From NCBI RefSeq assembly GCF_902652985.1, contig NC_047017.1, positions 51,336,001-51,400,000 on the forward strand: a DNA stretch of 64,000 nt, read 5' to 3'. Under the pieces are notes generated by a model, which ran no database searches, was not told where the DNA came from, and saw nothing but the letters and a program-made list of their open reading frames with translations. Made by a program: the position numbers and the translations under genes. How positions within the stretch are numbered: position 1 is the first letter of the stretch; every line of letters begins with the position of its first letter. This DNA comes from Pecten maximus. Taxonomy: Eukaryota. Positions 1 to 46,374 of this stretch are shown here, piece by piece.

Positions 1-1632
1 CCTGTTAATCTACAGAGACAATGAAACATTCCACTCGACACTGTCACGGGAACGTTACCTGTTAATCTACAGAGACAATGAAACATTCCACTCGACACTG
101 TCACGGGAACATTACCTGTTAATCTACAGAGACAATGAAACATTCCACTCCATACTGTCACGGGAACGTTACCTGTTAATCTACAGAGAGAATGAAACAT
201 TCCACTCGATACTGTCATGGGAACGTTACCTGTTAATCTACAGAGACAATGAAACATTCCACTCAACACTGTCACGGGAACATTACCTGTTAATCTACAG
301 AGAGAATGAAACATTCCACTCAACACTGTCACGGGAACGTTACCTGTTCATCTACAGAGACAATGAAACATTCCACTTGACACTGTCACGGGAACCTTAC
401 CAGTTAATCTACAGAGACAATGAAACATTCCACTTGACACTGTCATGGGAACGTTACCTGTTAATCTACAGAGACAATGAAACATTCCACTTGACACTGT
501 CATGGGAACGTTACCTGTTAATCTACAGAGACAATGAAACATTCCACTCGACACTGTCACGGGAACCTTACCAGTTAATCTACAGAGACAATGAAACATT
601 CCACTTGACACTGTCATGGGAACGTTACCTGTTAATCTACAGAGACAATGAAACATTCCACTCGATACTGTCATGGGAACGTTACCTGTTAATCTACAGA
701 GACAATGAAACATTCCACTCGTCACTGTCACGGGAACCATACCAGTTAATCTACAGAGACAATGAAACATTCCACTCGACACTGTCACGGGAACCTTACC
801 AGTTAATCTACAGAGACAATGAAACATTCCACTCGACACTGTCACGGGAACCTTACCAGTTAATCTACAGAGACAATGAAACATTCCACTCGTCACTGTC
901 ATGGGAACGTTACCTGTTCATCTACAGAGGCAATGAAACATTCCACTCGACACTGTCATGGGAACGTTACCTGTTAATCTACAGAGACAATGAAACATTC
1001 CACTCGACACTGTCATGGGAACGTTACCTGTTAATCTACAGAGAGAATGAAACATTCCACTTGACACTGTCACGGGAACATTACCTGTTAATCTACAGAG
1101 AGAATGAAACATTCCACTCGACACTGTCACGGGAACATTACCTGTTAATCTACAGAGAGAATGAAACATTCCACTCGACACTGTCACGGGAACCTTACCT
1201 GTTCATCTACAGAGAGAATGAAACATTCCACTCAACACTGTCACGGGAACATTACCTGTTAATCTACAGAGGCAATGAAACATTCCACTCGACACTGTCA
1301 TGGGAACGTTACCTGTTAATCTACAGAGACAATGAAACATTCCACTCGACACTGTCACGGGAACGTTACCTGTTAATTTACAGAGACAATGAAACATTCC
1401 ACTCGACACTGTCACGGGAACCTTACCTGTTAATCTACAGAGACAATGAAACATTCCACTCGACACTGTCACGGGAACATTACCTGTTAATCTACAGAGA
1501 CAATGAAACATTCCACTCGACACTGTCACGGGAACATTACCTGTTAATCTACAGAGACAATGAAACGTTCCACTCGACACTGTCACGGGAACGTTACCTG
1601 TTAATCTACAGAGACAACCTTACCTGTTCATC
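1..1632. repeat. 57-bp minisatellite, 28 or more copies, anchored on the BPNT1 exon 3 donor
   Basis: Unit cctgttaatctacagagacaatgaaacattccactcgacactgtcacgggaacgtta; explains the ORFs at 348-1735. Confidence 0.97.
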
Positions 1633-4600
1633 CTTAACATCTTCTAAGAATTTTGGACAGTCATGCTTCAGTACATCCTCACTAAATCCAAGTTCTATAA
1701 AATCGGCTGGAATCTTTTCTGGTCCTAGTTGCTAGTAACAAAAAGACACAGTTTTTAGACAAGTATACTTCATATGAAAATTGTATTCCAAAATACTATG
1801 GAAGTTGGCATGTAATTAAGTATTCAACTCCTTCTGTAGTAATATACAGTTCCGATACCAGTGTACCGTACTAATTGTGTGTCAAAATTGATACCACAAC
1901 AGCCATGGTAAAATTCTTTAACTACATCATCTATATTCATGATTAATGATTTTCCTAATGTAGTGGCATTCATATTGCCTATAAACTGAATCTGAAAATA
2001 GTTTAATAATACTTGTCAGTATGATAATGATTGTGGCTTTAATTTTTGGAGCACATTACTGGAACATCCAGTAGAACTTCAGAAACACCACACGTCCTGC
2101 AGTTGGACAGTTTTCATTATTATTATTCATAACAATTGGATAATTATCATAAAAAAAACAAATTTTCTGATATTTCGTTTAGAAAACCCTTTTATAATTT
2201 ACAATGTCAGTTCTGTATTGTAAATGGAAAATTCCTATTACATGTAGAATTTACATAGTTTTCTTGATAGCTTTGCTGAAATAATAAAACTTTATGTGAA
2301 TGAGACATACACAATTGGTATGATTTAAATTTACATATAAAGTAACCATCTGTTGTCCACCTCCCTTGTGTATCCAGATCACTGTTGTAACGGGAACATT
2401 AGATATTCATGATCAATATATAGCAATTTAAGGACAAACTACTTACTGACAAACTGACTAGCATGAATTCATTGAATTGTTTTTATTGAGATTGCTATTT
2501 CAAGTCAGTTTAATATATAAACACATTTGAGTTACCTCGGTAAATAAACAGCGATGACCATAATGTGTACATCGGGTAAACTTAATTACTGGTAGTAACA
2601 TATTCAGTATTAAACTGAATTAAATACCTCCAGGCCTGACGTCTCTAAGTTACCTAATTGAATATTTGGGAGTGTGACTTTAAAACAGTTATATATTAAT
2701 ATACCTTTAGACCTGATCGATGTATGACCTTGAATACCTGAGGACAAGACCTTTAGACCTGATGTATTACCTTGAATATCTGAGGACAAGACCTTTAGAC
2801 CTGATGCATGACCTTGAATACCTGAGGACAAGACCTTTAGACCTGATGTATTACCTTGAATACCTGAGGACAAGACCTTTAGACCTGATGCATGACCTTG
2901 AATACCTGAGGACAAGACCTTTAGACCTGATGTATTACCTTGAATACCTGAGGACAAGACCTTTAGACCTGATGTATGACCTTGAATACCTGAGGACAAG
3001 ACCTTTAGACCTGATGTATTACCTTGAATACCTGAGGACAAGACCTTTAGACCTGATGTATTACCTTGAATACCTGAGGACAAGACCTTTAGACCTGATG
3101 CATGACCTTGAATACCTGAGGACAAGACCTTTAGACCTGATGCATGACCTTGAATACCTGAGGACAAGACCTTTAGACCTGATGTATGACCTTGAATACC
3201 TGAGAACAAGACCTTTAGAATTGATTGGCTATGTCGCTATATTTTAACAAAGATTTGATATGTTTTGAAAAAGAGGCCCAGGAGCCTGAATAGTTCACCC
3301 CCTTTTCACTAACATTACCTTAAACATTGTAAATCATACAAATATAAGGTAATCAAAGAACCATAAGAAAACAGTAATGAAAGCCTGAGATAAAAATTCA
3401 ACACCACTAATTAAAAATTAGACATGTATTACAGTACACTTCTAATAATAACTCTGTCTCCAGAGGGACTTTTCCCTCTCCCAACCCTAAACCTTCATAA
3501 ATGATAAAATTGTACCTGATTAAATCAGGCATGACTTCATTCAAATTAAGATACTAAAATACCTTCACATTCAGGGTATTGATTAAGGAATTTTTAATTT
3601 TCTCTTTCAGGTCCTTCCCCTCCGCCTCCATCAAGGCCTTGTCAGACTCTATACATACACAATACCCATTTACCCAGGCATGCTCCTCACCAAACTTTGT
3701 CAAAATCCAAGGAATCATTCTAGAATACCTATATGTGGCTTATATATCATACAGGTAAGCCAACTGAGATACCATACCATCTACTAAAACGGGACTAAAT
3801 AGGAAAATGTTCAGAGGAATAGGGAGAGCTCACACAGACAATATTACCAAGCATACTTAAACAGCTGTGAATAAATTAACATGTATTATCACCAAAACTT
3901 AATGTCTGGGTACATTCAAAATATTAATTATTTAGTGATCAATTTCAGGTGGTGGGTTTGTTGAGATTGATCAATGGAACACCTATTGATGTTATAGAAA
4001 ATCAAACAAAGCAATCAAATGAAATCAATTATCATCTGAATTACCTTGACTTGACACGTGACTTTTGGTAGATACATAAACATATACACAGCTATTGTTA
4101 GGGAAAATGTAACATAAATCCACAGTTATGGAAGTGTACATTGCTCTACCTTGGATGATATATCAGGAAATACAAGGATTTATATTGTTTGAAACCCATC
4201 CATGGCTACTAAGAATTTTTTTCTGTAGTATCCTTTTATTAGGCTAATGTTAAACTAAATTGTGGGACTTGTGTATATAGTACACCCTAGGATGATAATT
4301 CCTTGAAAAAAAGTCACAAAACAAACTGTGACACAAAGTCAGCCATTCCTAATGTATATTGTGTACATCTGTCAATTGTTACATTATATAGATAAGTATA
4401 AATTTTGTTAGTAAGATGAGTTACAATTAACATATCACATAATTTTGTTTATCACACCATGAAATATGTTAGTTATGCAATCATGTTAAAGGTGAATTAT
4501 AATACTCCATTTCAGGGTAAATGAAGGAATAGAGAGGGAAGCAACATTAATAAGGAGGTGTTATCACCTACCGTCCAGATGTTCTGTTTTGGTGAAAGAG

Positions 4601-10600: not shown

Positions 10601-10964
10601 TAATTTAATAATACGTAAAATACACTAAGGTAACAGATATACACAAAATGTACAACGCAAATGATACGAACCGACAGAAACAACATTTTTCATACTTTTA
10701 ATACTGATTGATTTTTCTGTTTCAGTAGAAACATGTGAAAACGCGTCATAGATCAATAACGAGAATGCTTCCGAATTGGGTCACTGCATTCCTTGAGTTC
10801 TGAACCAAGTATCACTTCGATCACTGCAGTATGCTTACCTTTTCAATAATCCCTAAATCTCCTTTTTTCATGACCTCTCTAATAATTTGGCTGGCACGGT
10901 TAGATACTGCCACAGAAGCAGACACAATCCGCATAATAAGCGAGCTACTCATGTTGGATGCCAT
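1624..10964 (-). CDS. BPNT1: 3'(2'),5'-bisphosphate nucleotidase 1, coding exons 1-3 (partial; continues beyond the left edge)
   Basis: Exons 10964-10839 (MASNMSSSLIMRIVSASVAVSNRASQIIREVMKKGDLGIIEK), 6410-6309 (GKNDFQTEADRSAQRCIVASLHKQFPKVSIFGEE) and 1731-1624 (QLGPEKIPADFIELGFSEDVLKHDCPKFLEDVKDEQ). All junctions are GT-AG and phase 0. Matches the BPNT1 N-terminus (GDLGIVEK, DxQTxADR, IxGEE of the inositol monophosphatase family). Confidence 0.93.
2703..3218. repeat. 42-bp minisatellite, about 12 copies (BPNT1 intron 2)
   Basis: Unit acctttagacctgatgtatgaccttgaatacctgaggacaag. Confidence 0.95.
8465..8822. mobile_element. Non-autonomous hairpin-headed element (about 160-bp palindrome plus internal complement of the right end)
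   Basis: Inverted arms around ccgcaaagcgg (about 8542-8552); ataatttaatttcgt (about 8625) pairs with acaaaattaaattat at the right end; absent from the paralogous segment near 10420. Confidence 0.75.
8857..9006 (+). mobile_element. tRNA-derived short repeat (Pol III A/B boxes), with a second copy at 10426-10565
   Basis: TGGCTCAGGAGGTAGAGC...GGGTTCGATTCC; no intact cloverleaf. Confidence 0.7.
9020..9332. mobile_element. Helentron-associated (HINE-like) fragment with about 155-bp internal repeats
   Basis: Two diverged copies of tttggccc..ccctc..gggggtcagc.ccaccatttgtaca...gaagaagt ending in a GACG microsatellite. Confidence 0.6.
9351..10097. mobile_element. Non-autonomous DNA transposon, TA-flanked (Tc1/mariner-type)
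   Basis: Imperfect TIRs TA|CTCCTATACATATATGAGG ... CCTCTAATATTATTGGAG|TA; it splits the GACG tract of the neighbouring element. Confidence 0.55.
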
Positions 10965-11317: not shown

Positions 11318-14300
11318 ATGTGGTCATTCTTTTCAAGAGATCCTACAAAGGATTTTCATTATGAAATCCTCGAAATTGTCCCAGGTTTGGAAGAAAAGTC
11401 GATTTGGACACTTCACAACGGAAAGAAAAAGGTGCTGGTGATACCTTATTGACGTGTTGTTAAAATGTACCTAAAGGGCAAACAACAGTTATTCTAGATT
11501 TACTCCAATAATATAGTGCTTATTGTCATGTTGTCACCTTTGTGTGTTCCAGAATGGTTCATCAAAATAAGTCAAAATATCTAATTATATTTAGTAGGCC
11601 TAATTAAAAATACTTGTCATATAAAAGTTTTATATTACAAAAGTTTATGAAAAATAGTTGTAATCTTTACCGGGTATTTGAGACGTATAATAGAATGTTT
11701 AAGATACTAAATATATCTGCTAGAAACGAAATAGCATGTTTATGTGTATTTCCCCAAATTAGTATTAATCTAAACATAATTAAATATCTAAATAAGTTAC
11801 ACATTGAGAGTTGTACATGTAGTATAAGAATATATACTGCTTTTCATTTAACAGTGTTACATTTGTATTTGTCACTGGTAGCTTGGTAGAAACCACATCA
11901 ACCAATAGGAGACTTCTTTCATTCTTTATTATCATCGAAAAGACCTACAAATACGACACAATACAATACATTTTCACTCTCGCATTCACATATATAATAC
12001 TAAAGACAACTCGCGACGACCAAGGTTCCCGACCTCCGATAAATATAGCGCTGTATATTGTATTAATAATTATAATATTTATATAAGAGTAATATATTAA
12101 TATGTATCCATTATATTATAAGCGCACGTATAGAATGTACCTATCGGGCAATACTGCTCCTGTACGGGTAGTTCATAGAACATGTATATCTGTTGTAATG
12201 ATAGATACATGTACCACTGTAGGATGTAGTTGTGGCGGCAATGACAGATCCTTCTCTTACGAGTCGGATTGTAGAAATGACTTGGGTAGAAAGTATTTAC
12301 CCATAAGTCAGAATAGTGGCGGGAATACAGGGTGCTTTATTCGTGCAGAGGGAAGTCCAAAGTCTACGAGGTCTACGTCATACATACAACTCAGTCGGAA
12401 TGTTGAAACGGAACATAACAACACAGTACATATACATTCCAAACTGATGACGTCACATACCCTGTTCACAACACAGGGACACCATGCATACACACAGTCA
12501 TTACTAATATAAATACACATACCTGGGCTACATATTGAATGATTTTTTTTTTATTACAGATTTTTAATTGTAAAAAAACTGAAATACGAGCATACAATTT
12601 GTACCTACCTTTTTTTGACTGCATCCTGTCATCACATATATATATATATGTATTTATAGTTGTAAGTTAATTAATGTAAAGTCGTTTTTACACAAATCAA
12701 CCCAATTGCTTAATTTTATGACAAAATCATCGGGTAAAGTTAATTTTATAGTCATATTACCAAGCTTTAAGACTAAGTATTTTCTCTGAAAAAAGGGAAA
12801 ATCATATTAAACCAATTCACAAAATTTTGGTGAAATTAATATGCCATTGTTACAATCTCTCTGTCTATAACTAGTGTTTTTCAATGGTATATCTAGATCT
12901 CCTATCAGTATCATATTCACTTGGATATGTTCCATATTGTATTCTACTATTCTTCGTCTTGACCTGTAATGTTGATCTCAGTCATTGGAAAAGTTTACCT
13001 AGGACATAACTGAAAATATTTCAATTAGGCAAATTTTGTATGACCGTGCACCTTAGGTAAGCAGAGTGTATTGCGTGCTATGGACCTAGTATTCGAAACA
13101 CTATTTTGCCCAGAAAGATTGCTTCAACAGATCTTAAGCTCTAATTGAGTGAATTTGACTGATATATGTTCCTGTTCCTAAGTACCTGTATATCAGAAGC
13201 AGAATCCTTTGATTTCAATACACAAACTTATGGGTGTTGGATGATACACTTGGCTTTCACCTAGGCTGCTGGGGTTCGATTCCCCAATTGGACGTGATAA
13301 GATATGGCGTCACCTGCCTGACCATGCATGTGGGTTTTCTTTTCCCTGGATACTCTGGTTTCCTCCTACAGTAAGACCCCTCATCAGGACACATTTAGTA
13401 TAGGTTGAAATAACTTGTGAAGAAACTGTTGTAAAATGAATTAAGTTTACATCTTAAATGAATGAACATTTTTTTCCTGCAGAGCACAAATGAACCAGTC
13501 TCCATATTTGCCTTTGATGTAAAAGGCAGCAGTGAATCTCAGGTAAAGCATGCTAATACATTTATGATGTTACAGGTAACAATACATTGTTGTATGGGGA
13601 TGTTTTCTTATGCTTTAATTATAGCACAGGGACATGACAAAAAACTTGTAACCCCTGTCTGTTTATAGTATGATGATTTGTGTCCCTGTATTTGATATTG
13701 TATATAGTGTAGATCTATGTGTCACTGGTAAAACGTGATTTTTGTTTAATCGTGTTGAATGATTCAGGGTAAAGCACTGATTCAGAAAATATTTCTCTGG
13801 TATATATTTTTAGATGTGTTGATGTGGATAAAAGTTCATATTCAAACAACTTGTGCTGATCATCTTGTAGTTATAATTAATTTACCTTGGTAAAGTTAAA
13901 CCAAATCGTTGACAAGTATGCTTTATAAGGTTGTATGCAGCATTTTGACTTGTGTTACATAATTCATACTTTTAGGTGCAACTTGCAAAAGGAGCTTTGA
14001 AGAGAATCAAAACTCTACGCCACCCAAACATACTCACGTTCCTTGATGGCATTGAAGTAAGTGTTGTGTCAACACCTCCCAAACATACTCACTTTCCTTG
14101 ATGTCATTGAAGTAAGTGTTATGTCAACACCTCCCAAACATACTCACGTTCCTTGATGTCATTGAAGTTAGTGTTGTGTTTACCAGATAACTGCATGGTG
14201 TTATAAAGTTTTGTAACAGAACAAAAAAAAAGAAAATTTGTGAAGTACAGTAGTAGCTCTCTTTTTCAAAAATTATTATCAAAATACCCAAATTATATAT

Positions 14301-17300
14301 AACATGTATTTCAATACTTTTTGACACATCTGACCACAGACAATAGATTTTATTTATCATTTGAAATTGTATTGCTTCTAGTAGACCCTGGAGGGTACTT
14401 TTGTTTGTTATTTGACTCCTTGAAATGAGATTTGACTCAGTTTATAGTTTGAAAGGGAGATGTTTTGTTTCTTAGATTTCTAATTATGGTGATTTATTTG
14501 ACATCTGAAATTTCTACAAGTCCAGGGTTAACTGTAAGCCCTGAGTTATTACTGAATGCTTTTATTACATGAGATAACATCATTATGTACTGTAAGTTTT
14601 CCTTGAATTTACTTTCAGACAGAGAAGGTTATTTATTTTGCAACAGAACCAGTTGTTCCTCTGGAAACATACCTGAAGGACAATGAAAGCCTTGGTGACC
14701 AGAACTCCCTGGCCATCTCATGGGGACTACATCAGATTGTAGTAAGTTTGATTATCGCCTCCTGACCTACATAATCACATAATCAATTCAAGTTCAACAC
14801 AAAGTGTTTTATTGGATAATGTTACCAAAATATTGGCCTGCTGTTATTTTTCATCAAATCAGTATAAGATTTGGTTTTAGTTTATGTGGATTTGAAGTGA
14901 AAGACATGAACATGCTCAAGTTCAGTGCAGACTTGAGACACTTAATGTAAAAAGAAGTCTAGTATCAGTCTATTACTGTAACAGAAGCTATAATTTTTGT
15001 ATCCCTGGTATATACCATATGTAATACACTGCTCGTCCAGAGAGAACTTCTCTTTAGCTCTCATATTCAACATAAGACTGGTATTCCAGAGGCCTGAATC
15101 AATCCCCAGTAGAGGCATGGACATGAATATAATTTATCATGAACTCTGTAACATTATTGTAAATTCTCATTATCTTATATAAATTTTTCTCTCACAGAAA
15201 GGGTTATCTTTCCTGGTGAACGATTGTAACCTGATACACAACAATGTCTGCATGGCCTCCGTGTTTGTGGACCCTGCGGGGGAGTGGAAGTTAGCAGGTG
15301 TAGACTACATGTATCCAGCTCAGGGGCAGGACTCCGTACCGCCAGTCAAAATACTACCAGTGCTGGAGAAGTATGATCCACCAGAGAAGTCGGACCTACG
15401 CAGGGGAATACATGGGGAGAAATGGTCAGTTTCTTTATCTGTATATAATGGTCAAGTTTTAATGTCATTCCTTTTGGCACTATCAGGCCATTATATTTGT
15501 TTTTGTCTTGTTTTAACTCCATTCTCTTTGAGATTAATAAGAAGATATTTATCTTCTCAGTTTTGATTAGTAAAAACCCCAAAGTCTGAAGGAAAAAAAT
15601 ATTCCAGACCAGTTTATTTTCCTGATTTACCTTAGAGATGCCCCTGATCATAGCGATATTGGAATTGATTAATACCTACATTCTTTTAAAAAGAATTGGC
15701 TCATGTTCAGTTGTCAAAAGTGTGAAATGTGGTAAATAATTACCTGTACCTTTAAGTTACATACACTTTAATATGTTTTGTATTTCAGGTCATCAGATAT
15801 GTGGGGCTTAGGTTGTTTGATCTGGGAGGTGTTCAGTGGTCCACTACCTAAGAATACATCTCTGAAGTCCTTAGGGAAGGTAGATTATATAATTACATTG
15901 TCAACATCCCGCAGTTAGGGAAGGTAGAATATATAATTACATTGTCAACATCCCGCAGTAAGATAATTATCATTGAATGCTAACTTAAAAAACATCATTA
16001 TTGGAGTTAATATTTTTGATATAAACTTTTTTTAACAAGTAACATTTGAGAAATTTTGAATTGAATAAAAGATGTTCTTATATTTTTAAAAAGATCTGCT
16101 TAAATTCAGATCCCGAAATCCCTTGTGCCAAACTACTGTGAGTTAGTAGGAGCTAATCCAAGGTCACGACCAAATCCAGCCAAGTTTATAGAGGACTGTC
16201 GGAGAACCAACGGTTTCCTCAATAACGCTTTCGTAGATACAATGATGTTCCTCGGTGAAATACAGGTGAGATATGTCGGACACTTAATATCGTAAAATAA
16301 ATGTATAATTGATTTTATTGTTTCATGAAATTGATTTTGCTTTATCATAATGTATTATGTTTCTGCATGACGTCCCCATTAAAAAAAATGTATGAAGCCC
16401 ATTTGTATTATCATCATTGTTTAGCCATGTTACCTTCTTTGAAGTAACTGGTAGTCCTATTAGTGCATTGGTTTGATAGTGTTATCGTTTTTTATCAAAC
16501 GGAGGAACTATAACTGATAAAAAAAGTTTAGGTATCGAAGATCTAGCAATTTGGCACTGACGATTGGTGTTATTTTGACTGATTTGTTTGATATACAGAT
16601 TAAAGACCAGGCAGAGAAATCCACATTTTTCAGTGGATTGACATCATCACTGGACCTGTTCCCAGAAGTGTTTTGTAAACACAAAATTCTTCCTCAGTTA
16701 CTGTATGCGTTTGAGTATGGTAATGCAGGATCAGCCGTGTTAGCACCCCTCTTTAAGGTAAGTGTGACTACCATGTTTATCCTCGAGTAATAAAGCTCCC
16801 TCCCCTTGTGAAAAAGTTTAGTAGTTTGGGGAGGGCTTATTTGTGAACCTTGTTTAGCTTACCATTCTAAGGTTGGTGATTCTGCAAAAATGAAGAAGGG
16901 AAATAATAGTTGATAGGGGCTTATTTGCAGATAGATTAAGTACATACCTAAGGTTATTAGACTTGGCTGAGAAATTTGTTACTTTAATGCTGTAAAACAT
17001 TTTATTTCACATAAAAAAAATCTGTGTCGTATGTACTTGGACAATGACTGCTGTATTGTGATACGCCACACTTTGGTGAAACTAAATGGAATTTGCTTTA
17101 GGAAAACAATTCATTACCTCAGAAAATTATGTGATATAATTTATGAAAATCCTGCTGAATTTCTACTGAAAATTTTAATCTTAGATATTATATATGTTTA
17201 CACACATACACTGTATAGTGATTACGGGGTTGAGAATTTTCACCAAGTCCTTGTGTATTTTATCTGGTACGTCTGCTATACAAGGTATCAGTTCTTCTAT

Positions 17301-20300
17301 CATGGTACAATATCATTTGATTTATTTTACAGCTTGGTAAAAAGTTAGATACTGATGAATACCAGAAAAAGATAGTGCCGTGTGTTGTGAAACTCTTCTC
17401 CTCTCCAGACAGAGCAACACGAGTAAAACTTTTACAACAGGTTAGTCCATAGCCCAAACAAAATACAGCATTCGGTGATTTTGCTCAACCACCAATTTCC
17501 TTTGGTCCCACTACAGCAACTAGACTTTGTTTGCACATGCGTCGCCATTTAGAAGCACGGCAGTGATTGGTTGTTGTTTTTACGCATATGTAATCATATT
17601 AGGCTGAACAGCCTGCCTTTAGTAAATAGTTGACCCTTAAAGTGGGCCATGATTAGCCCTTTGACTGTTACTGCACTAAAGAAATTTTCCCATGAGACTT
17701 TTGAGATAAATCACAGCAAAGAATTTTGTGTAAGAAAACATTAAAAGATTAGATCTAAATATAATTAACACTTGTTAGTTAAACATCAGCAGCAAACAGT
17801 TGTGAATCCAAAACAGGAGCTATGACCATTAAAATGATTGACCAACATGATGTTACTTCATTATCTGTAGTAATGAGAAAGATATATTGTTTGGTATTGA
17901 TTTTATAAAACTTTTCCATTTTAGATTGACTCGTTCATTGACTATCTCCAGTCAAATGTTGTCAATGACCAGATATTTCCCCAGATCTCTACTGGATTCA
18001 TGGACACGGTCCCAGCAGTGAGGGAGAGTACCATCAAGGTATCCTGTACTAACTTATTTGTGCTGAATATGCAGACATATTATTCATGTAGTTTTCAGTC
18101 AAGATTATAATTGTCTGTGTCCAAAGAACACAATCAGTTCAGAAATGCACGCAATTTTGCAATACCTAGTAAGATATGTTATTTTTCAGAAATCTTAGAA
18201 TGGAATTATATTCCTCGAAGACAAAATATCAATCTGCAACTGGACTTCATCATTATTAACGTCAGGGTGCCTTTGGCACCTGCCGTTATAGGCGTGGTGG
18301 GGGAATGTTGTTACTGACAGATCTCTTCCGGCTAACTATTCCTCTTTTCTGTCATACAAATGATATACATCCGCAGCCTAATATAGTTCCTATTTTGATA
18401 GCAATTATTGACACAATTTAAGTGATGTAAACCGTGTTTACTGCAATTATTTAAAATGAAATGTTAATGTTAGGTGTTCTAGACTATTTTAGAGTATAAT
18501 TATTAACCTTTTCCCTCGTCAGTATATGCAATTTTGTTGGCGTAGGATTACGTAGTTCTGTCTCGATACTGCCTTGAAAACGAAAGTAGAAAAATCAGTT
18601 TGATCGTCGTGGAAATTTACATGCATTCACAGAGAAACTATTCACATCTGTTCATCCTGAGTTCATATGCAGGAACATTTGATAGCTTAAAATCATTCCC
18701 ATTTACGTAGTCAAATGCACCCGAGCATTCCACGAGATAACTTCAGCTGTCACGTGACTCTTCACTAGTCAGCCAAAATGGCGGTTATGTCTACTGTAAC
18801 TAAACCAACGACCGTTCGCAGTTTCATATTCATTTGTATGTCGCTAGAATACGCAAGAAATGTGACCAGGAATTGAGGGAAAGTTGTAACAAACTACATT
18901 GCCGTTTTTCGTGAGGATTTTATTAAATAAAGTTATTATTTGTTGTTTGAAAAGAATGTAATGATTATGATCCGTGACTGATGTACTGGCGGTGTCAAAA
19001 CTAGATATGTCTCGTCGGACAATGCGACCGCAATTTTCTATCAGAGTTAAAATGTTTTACTTAAGGGGTCATAAAATAGATGTTTGATAGGCCTTATTAA
19101 TAACTTAAAAAAAACTTCGCTGTGTACATCTTGGATTTTATCTTTAGTTGTAGTTACAACATGTTCTGTTAATAGACCGATTTGTCGCTCAGTTGATTCT
19201 TTTTTCAAAGTTTACAAGCAGCTTTACTGATTCAGGAGTATATCAGTAATCTTTCACAAGCATTTAAGAAATGGGGAAAGAACTATACTCAGCTATTGTA
19301 AAGTTGTCAGCTGATATATATATATATGTTATACATGTTTTCTTGAATATGTATAGAATAGAAATACCAGGGCCAGATGAAGACATTTCATCTGATACAA
19401 ATGTAACTGTCTGACTATAAAATCCAATTTTAAATTTCTTATAATATGACCTCAGACCCTGACGTTTCTCAGGGCCTTTGGCCCTTTGATTTTTTGATTA
19501 TTTATGATTTCTCTTTTCTTGGGCACAAACAAGAAATTCTTCATTCTGCAATTACATTATAGTTGAAGTAATTTTCCTATGCATGATCCACGGGTATAGA
19601 AAATATTCCTAGTTCAGTTCCTTCATGATTACGTTGGTTTAATATTTCCATTAAGTGAATTGTTATACATGTTCTAAACGTATATTGATTCTGATTATCA
19701 AGTATATCAACACGCTCCTAGATCTGTACAACTATACTTAAATAGTCTACCTCTCTGTAGGTGCAGTCTAAGTATATCAACATGCTCCTAGATCTGTACA
19801 ACTATACTTAAATAGTCTACCTCTCTGTAGGTGCAGTCAGTTTTGTATATTTGAAACCTTGATCTTTTTCAGGCAATGTTATATATGGCTCCAAAATTAA
19901 ACTACAAAAATTTAAATGAAGAGCTTATGAAACACTTTGCACGTCTTCAAGCTAAAGATGAACAGGTAAGAACTTATACACTTTGCACGTCTTTAAGCTA
20001 AAGATGAACAGGTGGTACTGATTTATATAAAAATTAATAAATTTGACTGAGGCTGAAAACTGATAATGTAATCTTCACTTTTCTCACTGGACTAGCATGT
20101 CAGAGATCGTACTGAAGAAGGAAATAAAAATAAAGGCATTGTCAAGTTTTACTTTATATACCCAAGTTTTACTTTATATACCCAAGTTTTACTTTATATA
20201 CCCAAGTTTTACTTTATATACCCTGTACATGAATTTGAATTGTAGACGTAATTCACTTTCAATGAATCAATAAACAGATGAAGAACATAAATTTCTCTGT

Positions 20301-23300: not shown

Positions 23301-26300
23301 AGTGCTAAATACATGTAGAGTTCAACTGTGTTGCAGATTAAAATATTCCTTGTTTTTAATTTAATTTTGTACTAGACAACTACTGTTATGTAAATATGTT
23401 CAATTTGTCAACAGTCTATTTCTTCCCTGAAATTCTATTGTCATTCCCTCTGTTAGTCAATCAGTACCATATTGTACCCTTACCTTAGTCAATCAGTACC
23501 ATATTGTACCCTTACCTTAGTCAATCAGTACCATATTGTACCCTTACCTTAGTCAATCAGTACCATATTGTACCCTTACCTTAGTCAATCAGTACCATAT
23601 TGTACCCTTACCTAGGAAAGTCCTGCATCATCACCCACATCAAAGACTGAACCGAGTGCCGGGGAGGGCTGGGATGATGATGATGATGATAACTGGGGCA
23701 GTTTGGAGGACACTGGACCTTCAAAACATGTGAGTCATGTACAGATGAAAGTGTTTAGAGGTTTTAATTAAATGTGGGGTTTAAAGATGAGTCAAGAAGC
23801 AAATATGATAGCTTGTATGTGCTATCGGTAGCCTCTGTAGTCCTGTGTTTACAAATAGGCATTTTAGTCCCAAACATGTTCATGCGCAAGAATATACATG
23901 TAATGTAGTGCCATTTTGGTGTCCAAAAAGAAAAACAAAATGTGTTTTGGGGAAAATGTTTGAATATCAATTCCTCAATTTTTGGAGAATAGATCAGTGA
24001 GATAAGGAAATTTACTTGTACATATTATAACTTGTATAATGAAGAATTTAAGTGAGACTGGTATGTAAATGAGTAGATATTTGTGTATGTATACATTGTC
24101 TAGTTACTGTTGTCAGTCTAAACTGTCAGTAAACTCTGGTGGAGGGATGAAGCTTGAGAAGAAGTCGAAGTCTGACGACTTGGGAGGAGGATGGGGCCAG
24201 GAGGAGAATGAGGACTTCCTGTCTATAGAGGACAGTGGTCTACAGCCCGCTAGTGCTTACAACTGGGGAGGAGCAGATCAGCCGACTGAGACTGACTTCT
24301 TTTCTTCAGCAATGGGCTTACCTAAGGTAGGTTTGATCAAAGTAGGAGAATTTGGGCTTACCTAAGGTAGGTTTGATCAAAGTTGGAGAATTTGGGCTTA
24401 CCTAAGGTAGGTTTGATCAAAGTAGGAGAATTTGGGCTTACCTAAGGTAGGTTTGATCAAAGTAGGAGAATTTGGGCTTACCTAAGGTAGGTTTGATCAA
24501 AGTAGGAGAATTTGGGCTTACCTAAGGTAGGTTTGATCAAAGTTGGAGAATTTGGGCTTACCTAAGGTAGGTTTGATCAAAGTTGGAGAATTTGGGCTTA
24601 CCTAAGGTAGGTTTGATCAAAGTTGGAGAATTTGGGCTTACCTAAGGTACCGTAAATATTCGGGTATAGTGCGCACTCGCGTATAGTGCGCAGGTACGTT
24701 TTTTTTTTTCAATTTTCAACTGAGCGGTAGATGAATTCTAAAGCATAAGATGATAGGAATTTGTAACTTATGAAAGCTTATTTACAATGTACCACATTCA
24801 ATTGGAATCACCGGTCAGATTTGACACATTGGATTGACAGGTTGTTTACATTATACCGCCACAGGCCTAGTCAGCTTGCAAATTGTAGTGGTCCCATCTA
24901 CGCTGTTGTACCAACAAAATAATTAATCCTACCCTCAATTACCTTGATGCTTTTCACGCAGGTATGATCTCTTGTGTTGTCTGTCCACGAACATACAAAG
25001 CTAATTAAGCTCAATTATAACAAGATTGACTAGTAAGCTGACTGCTACGTAATGTAACACAGGCCGCCATTTTGTATACAGTACGGAAACAGGTCTGCAG
25101 TCGTCGTGCTGGTCACAACTTTTATATCAATGAATAAACATGTGTAAAGGATAAATCTACAGTGCAGACGATAAATAAGAGTACCCTGGTAGTTTTCACA
25201 GTCATATCGTATTTTATATGGCCAGTTGGTCAGTGACTGCCGCACGAGATCAAGGCATTAGTGCCTAATTGCGCATGCGTGCTGTTACAGCTTCCGTAAA
25301 TAAACAAGTTGAACGTTATCAGTTTCAGGCAACATTCTGGATTTATAAGGTGATTAATTTAGAAGTATGAAATAACTAAGTACTGCTATATCATTTCAAG
25401 TTTTGTTTGATGTTAATTGAGATGTTATACATCGTTTTGGACCTGAATACGGGAACATGCTCAAGTGAGATCGTATGTGTACGGAACATGTGGCTCACGA
25501 TCGACTTAGATAAATCCACGTAATTGCTGATAACTATTCATTTCTTTGATTATTTGTTAACTATTACTTTCTTAATGCTTTATATATGTTATATATATAT
25601 ATATAAGTATTAAAGAAATTAAAGGAAACGATCACAAATCTCGGTCAAATCACATTCATTCTGACTGGGAAAAGGCTTGTACTTGCGTATAGTGCGCAGT
25701 GGCCTTTTTCACTTGTCAATTTTTGAAAAAAAGTGCGCACTATACGCGAATATTTACGGTAGGTTTGATCAAAGTTGGAGAATTTGACCAAAGGAAATTT
25801 AGTTTGATTTACTACTCTATTCAAATACTATGACTACTGTTGGTTTGTTTGCAACAGGTATTTGATAATTAGTCAGTAATTAATGATGATTAAATGTTGA
25901 TATTTTATTGACTTAAAAACATTTGGATTAAGCTGAATTTATTGACTGAAAATGTTTTGAAATTGAAGAAAATGATTGTCATTGTTTTTCAGAAGAAATC
26001 CCAGCCACATCAGTCAACCAAACCTTCAAATTCAAAAGATACACATTCAAGGGAAACAAGAGAGAGGTCTACACCGAGTGAACCAAAACCAAAGTCCAAA
26101 TCTAAGTCTCCCTCTCCACAGTCTGGATGGGGCGACGAAACAGGATGGGATGATGGGGATGCCTGGGGTACTGTCGGGTCTACAAGTGGTACCACCACCA
26201 CACGGGCTTCAAGTCAGCCGAGAGAGGTGGCACAGGGCCCAGCAGATACACAAGGGTCAGGCTGGGGAGAGAGTGCAGGGGGCTGGGACGAAGACTCGTG

Positions 26301-33930: not shown

Positions 33931-34225
33931 GAGGGACACAGCCCTACAGGCTTGTGACTGGAGCAGGACTTAACTGGAAGCAGATTTTCCCCTCTATAAA
34001 AACTTGTTGATGAATTTATTTCATAATTCATGTTTCAGTATTATAACTCAAGAATTATGTTCTGATAATTTGGGAGGATAGCATATATAAATTAAATGCC
34101 AGCACAGTCTCAGTAGAGCATATTTATGAATTGTCTGTGTCTTTTTACATAAAATAAAAACAGGTCAGTATCATTTTCCTGATCACAAGATAAGAATTTT
34201 TAGCAAAAATAATGCTTGGAAAAAA

Positions 34226-38185: not shown

Positions 38186-41100
38186 ATGGAAGAAATGTGC
38201 TTCTCTAGATTCTGCTTGTACTACTTCCTTATTGCTGTATCATTAAAGACTTGCTGGTCAAAAGGTATGTCATTTTGCAAATCACGTTGAGCTCATGAAA
38301 ACAAAATATGATTGCTGTCATATCCCTTAATACAAATTGAATGTTCTTATTAATAATTATTTCATCTGTAACTTAATAAACTGTTAAAAAAATCATAATA
38401 TAAAAAATTATTGTGTATAAAACTTAAAAAAATATGTTTGCTTTATATTTTACAGAAAGTGATTGTCCTCCAATTAATATTATTAATGCCAAAGTACACA
38501 CATACTCCCTTGACTCCCTGGAGGCTAGTGTAGAGTGTGATGAAGGCTACAGTTTATTTGGCTCTAACAAGTTATTATGTACCAGTGGAGAGTGGCAGCC
38601 TGCCACCCTACCCCACTGTGTCAGGAAATTACCTGCAAGTAAGTCCTGGGTTTTACTTCACTGTGTCTATAAATAGTACATGTCAACAAGTAATTATAAG
38701 TCCTCGGTTTTACTTCACTGTGTCTATAAATAGTACATGTCAACAAGTAATTATAAGTCCTCGGTTTTACTTCACTGTGTCTATAAATAGTACATGTCAA
38801 CAAGTAAGTCCTGGGTTTTACTTCACTGTGTCTATAAATAGTACATGTCAACAAGTAAGTCCTGGGTTTTACTTCACTGTGTCTATAAATAGTACATGTC
38901 AACAAGTAAGCCCTGGGTTTTACTTCACTGTGTCTATAAATAGTACATGTCAACAAGTAAGTCCTGGGTTTTACTTCACTGTGTCTATAAATAGTACATG
39001 TCAACAAGTAAGTCCTGGGTTGTACCTCACTGTGTCTATAAATAGTACATGTCAACAAGTAAGTCCTGGGTTTTACCTCACTGTGTCTATAAATAGTACA
39101 TGTCAACAAGTCCTGGGTTGTTACCTCACTGTGTCTATAAATAGTACATGTCAACAAGTAAGTCCTGGGTTTTACCTCACTGTGTCTATAAATAGTACAT
39201 GTCAACAAGTAAGTCCTGGGTTGTACCTCACTGTGTCTATAAATAGTACATGTCAACAAGAAAGTCCAGGGTTGTACCTCACTGTGTCTATAAATAGTAC
39301 ATGTCAACAAGTAAGTCCTGGGTTGTACCTCACTGTGTCTATAAATAGTACATGTCAACAAGTAAGTCCTGGGTTTTACCTCACTGTGTCTATAAATAGT
39401 ACATGTCAACAAGTAAGTCCTGGGTTTTACTTCACTGTGTCTATAAATAGTACATGTCAACAAGTAAGTCCTTGGTTTTACCTCACTGTGTCTATAAATA
39501 GTACATGTCAACAAGTAAGTCTTGGGTTGTACCTCACTGTGTTTATAAAAAGTACATGTCAACAAGTAAGTCCTGGGTTTTACCTCACTGTGTCTATAAA
39601 TAGTACATGTCAACAAGTAAGTCTTGGGTTGTACCTCACTGTGTTTATAAATAGTACATGTCAACAAGTAAGTCCTGGGTTTTACCTCACTGTGTCTATA
39701 AATAGTACATGTCAACAAGTAAGTCCTGGGTTTTACCTCAGATAGTATCTGTATATTACCTATGAGAAAGTCTGTAATTGTACCAGATTGTATCCACAGA
39801 TTGTCTACAACTAAATATTTTATCTGAATTTTGTGTAAAGAATCCTTAGGGGGAAAGGGAATAAATTGTTTATATTTTCACATGCTAAAAAATATTACTA
39901 TTCTTCTTCAGTTTTGGCTTGCTCAAATCCAACATTTAGTCATGCCAAAGTCACAATGGACCACTCAAAGAAATCAGCCGAGGTTCACTGCGACAGTCAA
40001 TACAGTATAAAATTTCATGAGCAGTCTCTCAGCTCACTGAAGATTGTTTGTAGCCAGGATTTACGTTGGGTCACGGTCCAGGGTTGGTCCGACATTCCAG
40101 ACTGCACAAGTGACATAGGTAATATGTGTAGAAGCTCTATTCCGTTTGGTTAAGATATTATGTAAAAATAACATAAAATTGGAGAGTTCATTGAGTTGCC
40201 TTTTAAGAGTGCTAAAATGCTAGGATATATGTTTAGGGTAATGGGTTGTATGTGTAATCATTGCAATAAATGTGACAGAAATACCATGAATATGTACCAC
40301 ATATTTTAGCGTTTAATAAGTTTTTACATTGAAAAATACATCATGCATGAGACAGGTGATTGTAACTTTAGGCCCCGACAATGTATGAAATAACATGTCA
40401 GTTTTAGGCCCCGACAATGTATGAAATAACATATCAGTTTCCATGCTGTAAGGCAAACTAAGAAATCATCCATGTATTGTCAACTATGGTGTTAACTTAG
40501 CATTTTGATTATTTGGTTGTGACTGGGCAGTTCTTAATTATTGCCAATTTAGGTACAGTTACCTGTAAACCTGCGCTCTCATGCTAGCTATGTAAAATTT
40601 GTGATGTTATATCTGAATGACTAGGGCAGTTGATTCCTTATGTAATTGTCATTTCAGAATGTCCTCCCCCTCCAGAGGTGAGGCATGCTCGTATGATTGA
40701 ACGCGTCAATAGCTGGACCCCGTATACACAGGACACACCTGTCACGTACACGTGTGACACGGGATACCAACAGTTATCTAGGGGCTCCTATGATGACTAC
40801 CTCTTTACTCCGTTTTACACTCTCCACTGCTCCGGAGGGAAATGGGTTGGAGCTAGACCAGTGTGCTGTAAGTCACTCTACATTGTGTCCTACGATTCAT
40901 CAAGTGTTTATATGATGTTAGGATCAAATGTGTATATATGCTAGTGTTTATATGATGTTAGGATCAAGTGTTTGTATGATGTTAGGATCAAGTGTGTATA
41001 TGATGTTAGGGTCAAGTGTTTGTATGATGTTAGGATCAAGTGTTATATGATGTTAGGATCGAGTGTTTATATGATGTTAGGATCAAGTGTTTATATGATG

Positions 41101-44100
41101 TTAGGATCAAGTGTTATATGATGTTAGGATCAAGTGTTTATATGATGTTAGGATCAAGTGTTATATGATGTTAGGATCAAGTGTTATATGATGTTAGGAT
41201 CAAGTGTTTATATGATGTTAGGATCAAGTGTTATATGATGTTAGGATCAAGTGTTTATTTGATGTTAGGATCAAGTGTTTATATGATGTTAGGGTCAAGT
41301 GTTTATTTGATGTTAGGGTCAAGTGTTTATATGATGTTAGGATCAAGTGTTTGTATGATGTTAAGATCAAGTGTTTGTATGATGTTAAGATCAAGTGTTT
41401 AGATGATGTTAGGATCAAGTGTTATATGATGTTAGGATCAAGTGTTTATATGATGTTAAGATCAAGTGTTTAGATGATGTTAGGATCAAGTGTTAAAATG
41501 ATGTTAGGATCAAGTGTTTATATGATGTTAGGATCAAGTGTTTAGATGATGTTAGGATCAAGTGTTTATATGATGTTAGGATCAAGTGTTTATATGATGT
41601 TAGGATCAAATGTGTATATGATGTTAGGATCAAGTGATTATATGATGTTAGGATCAAGTGTTTAAATGATGTTAGGGTCAAGTGTTTGTATGATGTTAGG
41701 ATCAAGTGTTTATATGATGTTAGGATCAAGTGTTTATATGATTGGGATCAAGTGTTTATATGATGTTAGGGTCAAGTGTTTATATGATGTTAAGATCAAG
41801 TGTTTATATGATGTTAGGATCAAGTGTTTGTATGATGTTAGGATCAAGTGTTTATATGGTGTTAGGATCAAGTGTTTATATAATGTTAGGATCAAGTGTT
41901 TGTATGATGTTAGGATCAAGTGTTATATGATGTTAAGATCAAGTGTTTATATGATGTTAGGATCAAGTGTTTATATGATGTTAGGATTGGCACTTACTTT
42001 CATACTTGGATCTTTTATAACAAATCAGTGTTAATTAACATCCAGTTACCAGTCCTCTACTGGTGAAACTGTTTCAAGGTATGTTGGCGAAAGTTGGTAT
42101 GAACTTCATTAGGAATAGCTACAGATCAAGTCAAGGTCAAGGTCATGGTCTCTGTTACTATTTTTAGTGGGATCAGGTAGGGACATGTATTGTTTTAGCA
42201 ATACCTAGCATGCTTGTTTAACTTCAATATTTATTTGAATCATTTTTCTTTGAAATCGAGTTGAGTTCTAACATTTTTTTTAAGTAACATCATGGTTAAT
42301 AGAACCCTAATGTATACCAAGCATGTATTTTGTAGTGAAGATACCAGGCTGTGACAGACCCCAGGATGTGACCAATGGTAAATGGACTGTCATACCTGGG
42401 ATGAATGACCTGGTAATGAGAGAGAACCAGGGCACCTATCCTATAGGCACACATGTCAAGTATTACTGTATTAACTCCAAAATCAGAGGAGCTGATGAAA
42501 TGGAGTGTCGCACTAATGAACTGTGGTCTCAAATGCCACCCATCTGTATGAACACTGGGGGTAGGTTTGTTATCATCATCTCATATAAAGTAAAACTATT
42601 TCTATATCTGTTATCGGCATTAAGCCTATGTCAGGTAATAACTCCACCCATCTGTATGAACACTGGGGGTAGGTTTGTTATCATCATCTCATATAAAGTA
42701 AAACTATTTCTATATCTGTTATCGGCATTAAGCCTATGTCAGGTAATAACTCCACCCATCTGTATGAACACTGGGGGTAGGTTTGTTATCATCATCTCAT
42801 ATAAAGTAAAACTATTTCTATATCTGTTATCGGCATTAAGCCTATGTCAGGTAATAACTCCACCCATCTGTATGAACACTGGGGGTAGGTTTGTTATCAT
42901 CACTGTCATATAAAGTAAAACTATTTCTATATCTGTTATCGGCATTAAGCCTATGTCAGGTAATAACTCCACCCATCTGTATGAACACTGGGGGTAGGTT
43001 TGTCATCATCACTGTCATATAAAGTAAAACTATTTCTATATCTGTTACCGGCATTAAGCCTATGTCAGGTAATAACTCCACCCATCTGTATGAACACTGG
43101 GGGTAGGTTTGTTATCATCATCACTGTCATATAAAGTAAAACTATTTCTATATCTGTTATCAGCATTAAGCCTATGTCAGGTAATTACTCCACCCATCTG
43201 TATGAACACTGGGGGTAGGTTTGTTATCATCATCACTGTCATATAAAGTAAAACTATTTCTATATCTGTTATCGGCATTAAGCCTATGTCAGGTAATTAC
43301 TCCACCCATCTGTATGAACACTGGGGGTAGGTTTTTTATCATCATCACTGTCATATAAAGTAAAACTATTTCTATATCTGCTATCGGCATTAAGCCTATG
43401 TCAGGTAATAACTCCACCCATCTGTATGAACACTGGGGGTAGGTTTGTTATCATCATCACTGTCATATAAAGTTAAACTATTTCTATATCTGTTACCGGC
43501 ATTAAGCCTATGTCAGGTAATAACTCTACCCATATGTATATCTGTTTCGTAGAATAAGACATTTCATTGTCTTGGGATAAGCCCCTGATTTTGAATTGGA
43601 GGTTATGTGTTCATGTCCTGGGTATATTTCAGAAAAATATGGCATATATTTTGATATATGAAAATACAAATGTAATTTATGTTGATTTGAAGTTTGGCCA
43701 GTTACTGAACGTAAATAGTTTCTATTGAAACTAAAACTTTATGTAGTAAATGATTTAACCTGTAGCATATGTTTTTCCATGGAAAAGGCATATTTAAAAA
43801 TGTAAAACAGGAACTGGATCGAAAAATGTCCATTTCACTAGAAAGATCAGGAATAGAAATTAAATATCTTATGGAAAGGGAGTAATATTTGTTGGTACAG
43901 ATACAACAGTCAAATACCATCCTTCTTACTGTTTTGGACTGTTTCAGCTCGATCAGATCCCTGCTCCAAGTTACCAATGGTCCCTAACGGTCAGTGTACA
44001 TGTAACAGCCACGCATCTGACCCTGACCAATGTAGACAACTTGGATCTATGGTGGAGTGTACCTGTATTGATGGGTTCCGACTCGCTGGGGAAGATCAAC

Positions 44101-46374
44101 TTAGCTGTGTCCGAAATAGTCAGGGACAGAATAACTGGAGTGCAAGCATACCAACATGTGTTCCTTCAGGTAAGTAGGCTTTAAAACTAGACCAACATGT
44201 GTTCCTTCAGGTAAGTAGGCTTTAAAACTAGACCAACATGTGTTCCTTCAGGTAAGTAGGCTTTAAAACTAGGCTGAAATACAGATAAGCCTGTTTGGCC
44301 TTTAGTTTATTGTGTCTTTTCCTCCTTCACTTCTATGTCACTTTGACACATTTGATCCCAATGGGGTTTAAAATGTTCCTAATGTCAAGGTCACATTTAC
44401 GAAAATTAGAGCTGTCAAACTTTTTCTGGAAATACTCTCTGAATCCAGAAAGCCACATGAGTACACTTTCTGAAATATCACATGATGAAACACTGTGATA
44501 TGCAAATGTACAGTTAGGGATTAAAAAGTTCCTAAGGTGAAGGTCAGCAGTTACTAAAATACAACTGAGAGTATACTGTCAAAAATACATCATGTAAGGC
44601 CTTTACAAAAGGCTGAAGTTTCAAGAGATAATACATTGTTATATGCTAATGTGTGGAAAGTGTTAGTTCCCTAGGTAACTGTCACTTTTATTAAATTTGG
44701 ATGATAAAATGGAAATTTAATGTTAAAGGGTCAAAGGTCACCAATGACCACTTGTAATATAAAAAAAAAGATTATGAGATAACCCATAAGCCCCTCATTT
44801 GATTAAGTTCACTATAGTTTCATGTCAGAATCTAGTTTGACCTAATTATCTGTTGCAGGAATGTAAACTAGGTTGAGGTTGAATTTTGAAGAAAATATTG
44901 CCCATTTCCAAGTCCCTTTTTGATAAATACTAAAAAAATAGATCAATGCATCATAACAAATTATATCATATGTTCATCAAAGCTGGGATTTTACTGTCAA
45001 AAAGATTTTTTTTTTAGAGAAAATCTTATCAAGAAAAATACTTATATGTTATGACAAAAAATCTATTTTCACATGCTTGGCTATATTATAGGTCCATTAA
45101 TGATTCAGGGCAGGCAACTCTTTATATAGAACCACCTTACATCTTTACAATATGACCCTGGGACATTCTCTGACCAGACCTCACTTTTAAACAGACTTAA
45201 AGTGTTATTCCATGTTTTTAATTCCTTTCATGTATTCTTACACTATAAAGCACATCACAATTGAACATTAATCTTTATTGTTGAAGGAAACTTGTATGCA
45301 TACTTGTATTTTTACAGACCAGTCCATTCAGACGGCAGACAAAGACATGGATGATGGAGGTGGCCATATGAACACACTGGCCATTGTCATTGCCACCGCA
45401 TGTAGTGTGTTGGGTGTGTTGTTACTGGTCATGGTGGTGATGGTGTTCCGACGTAGAAAGCCACAGGGACGTCTGTATCCACAGGTAGGGGGCACACCAC
45501 CCCCATACTCCCGCGTCTATAACAACACCATAGACGAACACGACAGAGTGGCTTTGATTGGTTATGAGGCAGCAAGACTGCCATCATATGAAGAGGCTAC
45601 AAGGTCAAGGTCATTAGGACCGAGCAGGTCTGTAAGGGAAATAGCAGAAGATTGTGTGTCATCTGCTGCCGATTACAGACCCCTACCAAACATTCCCTCC
45701 AGTCTGCGTAACAATAGCCAGGCAGACACAGTAAGTAGCAGACATTCCATCAACACCATGAGTACAGTCAACAGGGACGGTATATCGGAGGTGTTTGGTT
45801 CTATAGACACTGTCAATGTGAGTATCAGTGATGCCTCCACATCCGTCACCGTGGATACGATGGACAGTGTTACTGTGGATACGCTGGACAGTGTTACCTC
45901 GCGACCTTCCAATGCCTCGGGCCGAGCTACTGCTGGCAGTTTGGAGACATCAAGAGAGAATCTGTCTACAGAAGGTAGGCAGATAAATCACAAAGTTTTG
46001 ATTATATACATAAAATGTACCCTTCATCCATGCATTCGACCTTCAAAAATTTCTCTTTGATGGTGATGGGATAATGCATGAATCTTCTTTTAAGGATCAA
46101 CACCAATACTGTTAGTGTATGGGCAAATTAAAAAGAAAACTTGTTTTGGTTAGCTCTAAAGCTTGGAGTGATCATGAATACTTCACTCATATAATTCTAG
46201 TTATCATCTATCTATGATTGATTTTTTTGGATAATGGTACAGTTACTGAACAGTTAAGAATCCTGTCAATTTTTTATTTCAGATGCCCCACTTCTGGACA
46301 ACAGAACAGAAGAGGAATCTGACAATGAAGATATTGAAATACAAATAGACGAGGACAACAAGGAAATACAATGA
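38186..46374 (+). CDS. Sushi/CCP domain type I membrane protein, SUSD4/SUSD6-like (signal peptide, 5 CCP, TM, PY-motif tail), about 624 aa
   Basis: Exons 38186-38264 (signal peptide), 38456-38638, 39912-40118, 40658-40867, 42336-42560, 43948-44169 (each a phase 1-1 CCP module ending W..xPxC), 45318-45974 (TM LAIVIATACSVLGVLLLVMVVMVF-RRRK, then PPPY and LPSYEEA) and 46283-46374. Probable non-coding first exon ending at 37095. Confidence 0.85.
38636..39740 (+). repeat. 51-bp (first units 57-bp) minisatellite, about 21 copies, starting at the CCP1 exon donor
   Basis: caa|gtaagtcctgggttttacttcactgtgtctataaatagtacatgtcaa. Confidence 0.96.
40899..41987. repeat. 22/24-bp minisatellite starting about 30 bp after the CCP3 donor
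   Basis: atcaagtgtttatatgatgttagg. Confidence 0.96.
42536..43535 (+). repeat. 108-112-bp repeat, about 9 copies, spanning the CCP4 exon donor
   Basis: ccacccatctgtatgaacactgggg|gtaggtttgttatcatc...cctatgtcaggtaataact. Confidence 0.96.
44150..44272 (+). repeat. 41-bp x3 perfect repeat spanning the CCP5 exon donor
   Basis: accaacatgtgttccttcag|gtaagtaggctttaaaactag at 44150, 44191, 44232. Confidence 0.96.

Follow-up and report, generated by a model that had tools for sequence, protein, structure and literature searches.

Minisatellites that straddle a 5′ splice site have been described in human genes. The closest described system is intron 7 of F7, where the first unit of a 37-bp variable number tandem repeat (VNTR) spans the exon 7–intron 7 boundary and the most upstream donor alone is used, an outcome that the authors of that work explained by 5′-to-3′ scanning (PMC1557585). 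In IFI6 (6-16), CBS intron 13, LMNB2 and PDGFA intron 4, the first monomer also lies across an exon–intron boundary, and the donor is reiterated 10-25 times (PMC1557585). Here we analyse ten such arrays, which we call donor-anchored, in three genes (a BPNT1-like gene, SCYL1 and a sushi gene) within a 64-kb stretch of the king scallop genome (Pecten maximus scaffold C3:51,336,001-51,400,000, on a scaffold of 53.45 Mb whose end is about 2 Mb away). This stretch is referred to below as the window, and positions are given in its coordinates. The ten arrays are of the human F7 intervening sequence 7 (IVS7) type: they run head to tail, the exon 3′ end lies in the first unit together with the authentic GT, and the upstream donor is the one used. 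Both the array type and the first-donor rule have already been described in human genes.

Ten splice donors in three genes lie in tandem arrays

An earlier reading of the window from its letters alone (the original prediction) had proposed that about ten of some 35 donors sit inside repeats of exon end, GT and intron start, and that a duplication process targeted at splice junctions was responsible. We mapped exons by tblastn with the database proteins P0005, P0165 and P0166, followed by an exact junction search; full-length relatives of SCYL1 were found by searching with one SCYL1 exon. P0166 (“N-terminal kinase-like protein isoform X2 [Pecten maximus]”) maps to the window and supplied the exon map of SCYL1 (11318-27022, plus strand), with seven exon matches at 100% identity, the remainder being imperfect solely where they run beyond an exon boundary, and with a single GT..AG solution at each of the 19 introns. 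Our transcript data are assembled contigs of public runs, which cannot span arrays; contigs from four runs (three studies) confirm all SCYL1 junctions at 19.6-24.4 kb. The BPNT1-like gene, on the minus strand, has exons 1-3 inside the window, and its exon 2 matches Pfam Inositol_P. The sushi gene, on the plus strand at ~38.2-46.1 kb, has five CCPs, with Pfam Sushi matches for CCP1, CCP4 and CCP5. The number of annotated donors in 1-44272 is 28 (BPNT1 3, SCYL1 19, sushi gene 6), not about 35.

The core observation is confirmed by Tandem Repeats Finder (TRF), by reading the units in register and by alignment: ten donors in BPNT1, SCYL1 and the sushi gene sit in repeats whose units hold exon 3′ end, GT and intron start. 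TRF identified 34 distinct arrays with a period of at least 12, and in eight of these the first unit contains a donor or begins next to one (periods 40-112, 2-28 copies, 94-100% matches); alignment added two more two-copy events. Six of the 19 SCYL1 donors, three of the six in the sushi gene and one of the three in BPNT1 are affected, 10/28 in total. At SCYL1 exons 3, 6, 15 and 18, the first unit contains the authentic donor according to the P0166 junctions, and a 24-nt junction echo test returned a downstream copy identity of 0.83-1.00 at these four; the background was at most 0.62, and other donors and all 19 acceptors scored 0.67 or less.

All SCYL1 exons discussed here have exact junctions and lie, like their arrays, on the plus strand. 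Exon 3 (13976..14056) runs into a 55-bp x2.9 array (14023..14179) whose unit joins 34 nt of exon end to 21 nt of intron, and which has GTTAGT in its third copy. At exon 6 (15789..15879) there is a 44-bp x2 duplication (15871..15959) with 9 nt of exon and 35 nt of intron per unit, and at exon 15 (22453..22575) a 73-bp x4 array (22532..22820) with 44 nt and 29 nt, respectively. Exon 18 (24117..24326), which is also supported by transcript contigs, carries a 40-bp x8.4 array (24313..24649; 14 nt exon and 26 nt intron) in which the authentic donor and the decoy donors are identical. The two weak duplications proposed at exons 11 and 13 fall below the TRF threshold and were found by alignment; both are real. 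At exon 11 (19873..19965; RNA joint 19963 to 20382, cut +2), the last 30 nt of the exon plus GT are present in two copies 46 bp apart (19936..20014), matching at 32/33 nt with the GT included and separated by 14 nt of other sequence. At exon 13 (20795..20983; seen in transcript contigs), the partial second copy (20964..21013) is an exact 14-nt duplicate of the exon end, 31 bp downstream, followed by CT instead of GT, so that the donor itself was not copied. At both exons it is the exon-derived part alone that was copied, after 14-16 nt of other sequence, which may hint at break repair without tying the break to the splice site.

In the sushi gene (plus strand), the 51-bp x21.5 array at CCP1 (38636..39740; TRF and register view) follows the exon at 38456..38638, whose acceptor is predicted; its size is as originally proposed, and in its decoys about 25 nt of exon end and the GTAAGT recur in diverged form, with indels. 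The CCP4 exon (42336..42560, with an uncertain acceptor at 42336 or 42341) leads into an array of about nine copies (42536..43539; TRF 112 x9.1; unit of 25 nt exon plus intron start), a copy number that had been given correctly, with a period that ranges over 108-112 and is not 108 alone. The CCP5 exon (43948..44169) ends in a 41-bp x3.0 triplet (44150..44272; 20 nt exon and 21 nt intron) that is 100% identical throughout and has no flanking microhomology. The minus-strand array of the BPNT1-like gene, a 57-bp x28.4 minisatellite (1..1617; TRF and register view), occupies the intron after exon 3 (1624..1731, minus strand; acceptor predicted only, with a 92% identical Argopecten ortholog exon) and runs off the window start. 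It is present as claimed, except that it begins 7 nt past the donor CAG/GTAAGG (last exon base 1624) and that its units repeat the exon end (15/17 nt) plus donor in diverged form. The arrays span the predicted range of stages, from a perfect triplet to arrays of at least 1.6 kb with decayed donors.

The units of the ten arrays are mutually unrelated, the best pairwise local score being 12 against up to 14 for shuffled units, which supports independent local origins as had been argued. The donor lies anywhere from 0.2 to 0.65 along the unit. Unit length is divisible by three in 2/10 arrays (57 and 51; CCP4 has 108- and 112-bp variants), as by chance, and the use of a decoy would consequently break the reading frame in most cases. 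No acceptor in the annotated genes of 1-44272 is spanned by an array. A perfect 32-bp x5 array (23453..23613, plus strand) ends at the SCYL1 exon 17 acceptor and copies intron sequence only, a 24-bp x46 array (40899..41987, plus strand) starts 32 nt beyond the donor of CCP3, whose last exon base is 40867, and does not include that donor, and another array starts 42 nt after the exon 7 donor.

The most upstream donor is spliced

The authentic exon had been predicted to be the 5′-most copy, and this copy is also the spliced one. For exon 15, position 22575 is joined to 22991 in all four runs from the three studies (RNA joint 22573 to 22989, cut +2), which makes the spliced donor the first of four that share the intron start GTAGGT. 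For exon 18, contig pieces stop at 24326, the first of nine donor copies. The most upstream donor is thus the one used, as shown by contigs for exons 15 and 18 and indicated by the annotated protein for the other arrays. No decoy junction was seen in the transcript contigs, although contigs drop rare forms and minor decoy use is possible. At exon 17, which starts at 23616, the last AG after the 32-bp x5 array is used (RNA joint 23140 to 23614, cut +2). Each array is in effect a natural experiment in splice-site choice, with up to at least 28 near-identical donors of which the first is used, and extends the F7 result to a mollusc. A donor mutation at these exons would probably move splicing to the next copy.

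The arrays are young and their decoys evolve in concert

Orthologous loci were compared in Argopecten irradians (L053) and Littorina saxatilis (L052). The Argopecten SCYL1 locus has the same 19 intron positions and exons that are 77-95% identical, its introns being otherwise unalignable. None of the six SCYL1 duplications is present in this ortholog, which is single copy at every donor, and no array follows its BPNT1 exon 3 (L053 1222-1332, 92% identical exon); the Littorina locus has no such arrays either. Absence from Argopecten despite identical intron positions marks the arrays as young and lineage-specific, and they arose after the split of the Pecten and Argopecten lineages. Intron gain by tandem duplication was also considered and is rejected, as Argopecten irradians has introns at all the same SCYL1 positions.

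The exon 15 decoys share two substitutions without counterpart in the authentic copy, and the exon 3 decoys share a G-to-T change. Since the authentic P. maximus copy agrees with Argopecten while the decoys carry their own shared changes, the first copy is under constraint and the decoys are in concerted evolution.

The Argopecten locus also has repeats of its own. SCYL1 intron 17 contains a 4.4-kb array (L053:23981-28356; 32-bp unit, TRF period 64) that ends at the exon 18 acceptor and whose unit includes the polypyrimidine tract and CAG along with 4 nt of exon start, making it an acceptor-anchored counterpart. Exons 11-13 lie in a ~2.2-kb tandem segmental duplication (L053:15486-16516 and 17696-18713), with identical exon matches in both copies. 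The head-to-head arrangement of BPNT1 and SCYL1 (window 10839-11318; L052; L053) is conserved between scallops and the gastropod Littorina saxatilis.

The excess of anchored donors is local

About 2.8% of collapsed window positions lie inside an array unit, so that some 0.8 of the 28 donors would be expected to do so. Against this, 10/28 were observed, with P(≥8) = 7e-7 and P(≥10) = 2e-9, a real local excess over the intronic background. The general enrichment at donors that had been proposed is therefore borne out within the window; it is not significant in 275 kb outside it, an independent sample of the same genome comprising 200 kb of random loci and 24 non-redundant WD40 loci. Array coverage is 19.5% in the window, 26.4% in the random loci and 11.8% in the WD40 gene loci. 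By comparison with these 12-26% of TRF array coverage, the P. maximus genome paper lists 0.99% simple repeats (PMC7191990).

Strong donor motifs in the independent sample were anchored in 4/100 cases after an open reading frame (ORF) of at least 45 codons and in 3/193 after a shorter ORF (Fisher P = 0.23). About 4-6% of likely true donors in the rest of the genome would be anchored, compared with 1.6% of pseudo-donor sites, a difference that is not significant. None of ~24 central WD40 exons has an anchored donor. In a position weight matrix (PWM) test, array units of the window give a clear signal for donor-like motifs and those of the random loci give none; in the random loci, motifs of at least 8 bits occur in 5/59 units against 10% of length-matched controls; the corresponding figures for the gene loci are 4/25 and 7.6%. 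Four clear donor-anchored arrays with exon-like ORFs were found outside the window, at L011 (two), L034 and L047, with Pfam identifying one L011 exon as a Na+/H+ exchanger and the L034 exon as WD40. The sample contains one acceptor-anchored array, a 44-bp x34 repeat in a P. maximus WD40 gene (L027:1-1521) that ends 10 nt into the exon and whose unit is TTTTACAG plus the exon start. Over the samples, 14 arrays span a donor and one spans an acceptor.

Whole-genome 9-mer counts of the donor motif were compared with reversed and shuffled controls, scoring the share of runs that are tandem. The donor motif CAGGTAAGT was found as a single 22,640 times, as a pair 6,290 times and as a triple 4,834 times, a tandem share of 8.9%. 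Its reverse (6,606, 387 and 279; 1.7%) taken alone suggested a 5-fold excess. The shuffled motif GATGACAGT (17,181, 3,462 and 2,566; 6.5%) and the reverse of the shuffled motif (14,649, 4,202 and 3,232; 9.3%) complete a control range of 1.7-9.3% within which the donor motif falls; a further 9-mer control was dominated by one 34-bp satellite family. On this test, to which we give little weight, the donor 9-mer does not stand out, any 9-mer in this genome lying in an array with a 2-10% chance. The first 7.3 Mb of C1 contain donor-motif arrays at 13 separate loci, with units unrelated to one another, and junction-type arrays may therefore be numerous genome-wide.

Origin of the arrays

The ten are separate, young minisatellites and, we think, probably tolerated by-products of a repeat-rich genome, with a heterogeneity that this account leaves unexplained. 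Each would have originated in a short local duplication of 31-112 bp that by chance straddled a 5′ splice site, copying the GT together with 9-44 nt of exon end and 14-87 nt of intron. With the spliceosome picking the first donor after the exon, later copies would be silent intronic decoys requiring no function of their own, and the duplication would be nearly neutral. The array could then grow, shrink and homogenise among its decoys by slippage or unequal exchange, with the first copy maintained by purifying selection. Duplications within exons would be purged by selection and acceptor-spanning ones mostly purged as well, leaving a bias towards donors; selection alone can explain the donor-over-acceptor asymmetry. 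With the extraordinary minisatellite birth rate of P. maximus, junction-spanning events would be expected to be common genome-wide. This by-product account fits all the observations except the strength of the local clustering.

Several results weigh against it. A uniform neutral birth rate could not account for so large a local excess: 6/19 SCYL1 donors are anchored, yet other array units make up only ~176 bp of ~12.5 kb of introns (1.4%), and array units show no G+C preference that might favour exon ends. Picking of this window does not explain the excess either, as at a genome-wide rate of ~4.4% we estimate P ~1.6e-7 per window and ~2e-3 over ~14,000 windows. The independent sample leans towards donors (~2.6-fold) while being too small for significance, and the existence of acceptor-spanning arrays (L027; Argopecten intron 17) means that a selection filter at acceptors would not be absolute. 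What the by-product account leaves over is the density in SCYL1 (6/19) and in the sushi gene (3/6). That 10/28 remains unlikely after correction for the number of windows points to strong rate differences among genes or regions, or to a junction-linked bias in some contexts.

The latter is the domain of a mutational process aimed at 5′ splice sites, in which breaks or paired nicks at RNA polymerase II (Pol II) pauses, R-loops or U1-bound nascent RNA would lead, by fill-in or end joining, to duplication of the donor segment. Such a process would be consistent with an at least 10-fold local excess in three genes normalised to their own introns, with the lack of flanking microhomology at the perfect 41 x3 triplet, with the resemblance of the exon 11 and 13 events to templated exon-end insertions with 14-16 nt of filler (a break-repair signature), with the further arrays that begin 32 and 42 nt past the CCP3 and exon 7 donors, and with the shared direction of the independent sample (4/100 vs 3/193). 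However, significance is confined to the window, the central WD40 exons are free of anchored donors, array units of random loci are not enriched in donor motifs, and the tandem share of CAGGTAAGT falls within the range of its controls; the neighbouring tetraspanin gene (near 56-57 kb, minus strand) has no anchored donor, acceptor-anchored arrays occur too, and with the donor at 0.2-0.65 of the unit, unit ends are not tied to the junction by sequence. The process is not supported as originally stated, and we regard it as possible but on balance unlikely. Its more specific form, in which germline breaks or nicks in the king scallop are linked to transcription or to recognition of the 5′ splice site and repeatedly duplicate 30-110 bp around donors in some genes or regions, strikes us as rather doubtful. 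If it were true, splice junctions would be mutational hot spots for minisatellite birth and the genome would offer thousands of natural tests of first-donor choice; a local excess due to junction-linked mutation bias would link RNA processing to structural mutation. Even without any mutation bias, the arrays can cause errors at exon ends in gene prediction, read mapping and variant calling.

Selection might instead have kept the decoys, whether for extra U1 binding against premature polyadenylation in AT-rich introns, for splicing robustness, or for tunable isoforms or nonsense-mediated decay (NMD). Many decoys do retain a perfect donor sequence and the arrays cluster in particular genes; but they are not conserved, being absent from the Argopecten ortholog, some donors have decayed (the exon 3 third copy, exon 13), transcript contigs, which drop rare forms, contain no decoy junction, unit lengths are mostly out of frame, and copy numbers run from 2 to at least 28 without pattern, all of which makes a selected function very unlikely. 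It is more improbable still that, at a heterozygosity of 1.7%, long-read assembly or polishing introduced false tandem copies into the genome sequence. Copy numbers of the kb-long arrays do rest on the assembly, the public runs being available as contigs, but array edges and flanks agree with independent contigs from separate studies (22787-22937, 23140-23482 and 19740-19838), decoys bear their own shared substitutions, the same architecture recurs at many loci and in another species' assembly, and PacBio reads are easily long enough to cover the arrays (assembly method: PMC7191990). Recurrence alone would speak for the insertion at exon ends of a mobile element or introner-like family bearing a splice donor, a scarcely credible source given that there are no terminal repeats or target duplications and that all intron positions are older than the arrays; for the ten we reject such an origin, as their units are unrelated (score 12 vs ≤14 shuffled) and each has its own exon's end.

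Other features of the window

The window has no N and a G+C content of ~35%, and a search of its whole length against Rfam returned no match. Between SCYL1 and the sushi gene, a 31-bp x43 array (32577-33920, 47% G+C) stands directly after a short segment flanked by CAG and GTATGAGT, and may be the donor-adjacent array of an unannotated exon. A 39-bp x6 repeat (53088-53320, 99% identical) lies inside a 170-codon open frame (53003-53512, minus strand), where its product would be six repeats of 13 residues; an exon downstream of the tetraspanin gene may thus contain a coding minisatellite.

Contig depth of the RNA runs reaches ~1,700 at 21600-22000 and 24600-25600, compared with ~20 at SCYL1 exons. 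The high-depth contigs continue into other sequence, and Rfam gives no match in these two intervals; they probably represent expressed dispersed repeats in SCYL1 introns. Transcript contigs of some runs also contain in-frame insertions relative to the assembly, AGG after 23095 and GATGAT after 23672, which look like allelic length variants of SCYL1 exons 16 and 17.

Comparison with known systems

Intron gain by tandem duplication of an AGGT-containing exon segment is the subject of the Rogers model, with which the scallop arrays share a short tandem duplication involving splice-site sequence. They differ from it in their outcome, since no new intron is formed here: an existing intron is lengthened, and all 19 SCYL1 introns are shared with Argopecten. 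The acceptor-anchored scallop minisatellites (L027; Argopecten SCYL1 intron 17) follow the same logic as the donor-anchored ones at the other end of the intron, where the authentic site is the last copy and not the first, and they are much rarer in our samples (14 vs 1).

Like the human minisatellites of IFI6, CBS, LMNB2 and PDGFA, the scallop arrays have a first monomer that spans the exon–intron boundary; IFI6 and CBS also use the first two pseudo-sites, whereas the scallop contigs show the first donor only, with minor use of others possible. The likeness to F7 is in the whole arrangement, with a first unit that holds exon end and donor, identical pseudo-donors after it and use of the most upstream site. 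In F7 a single gene carries a single array of 5-9 copies, whose unit includes 4 nt of exon; in the scallop the same arrangement is found at six donors of one gene and at ten in 44 kb, with 9-44 nt of exon per unit and from 2 to at least 28 copies.

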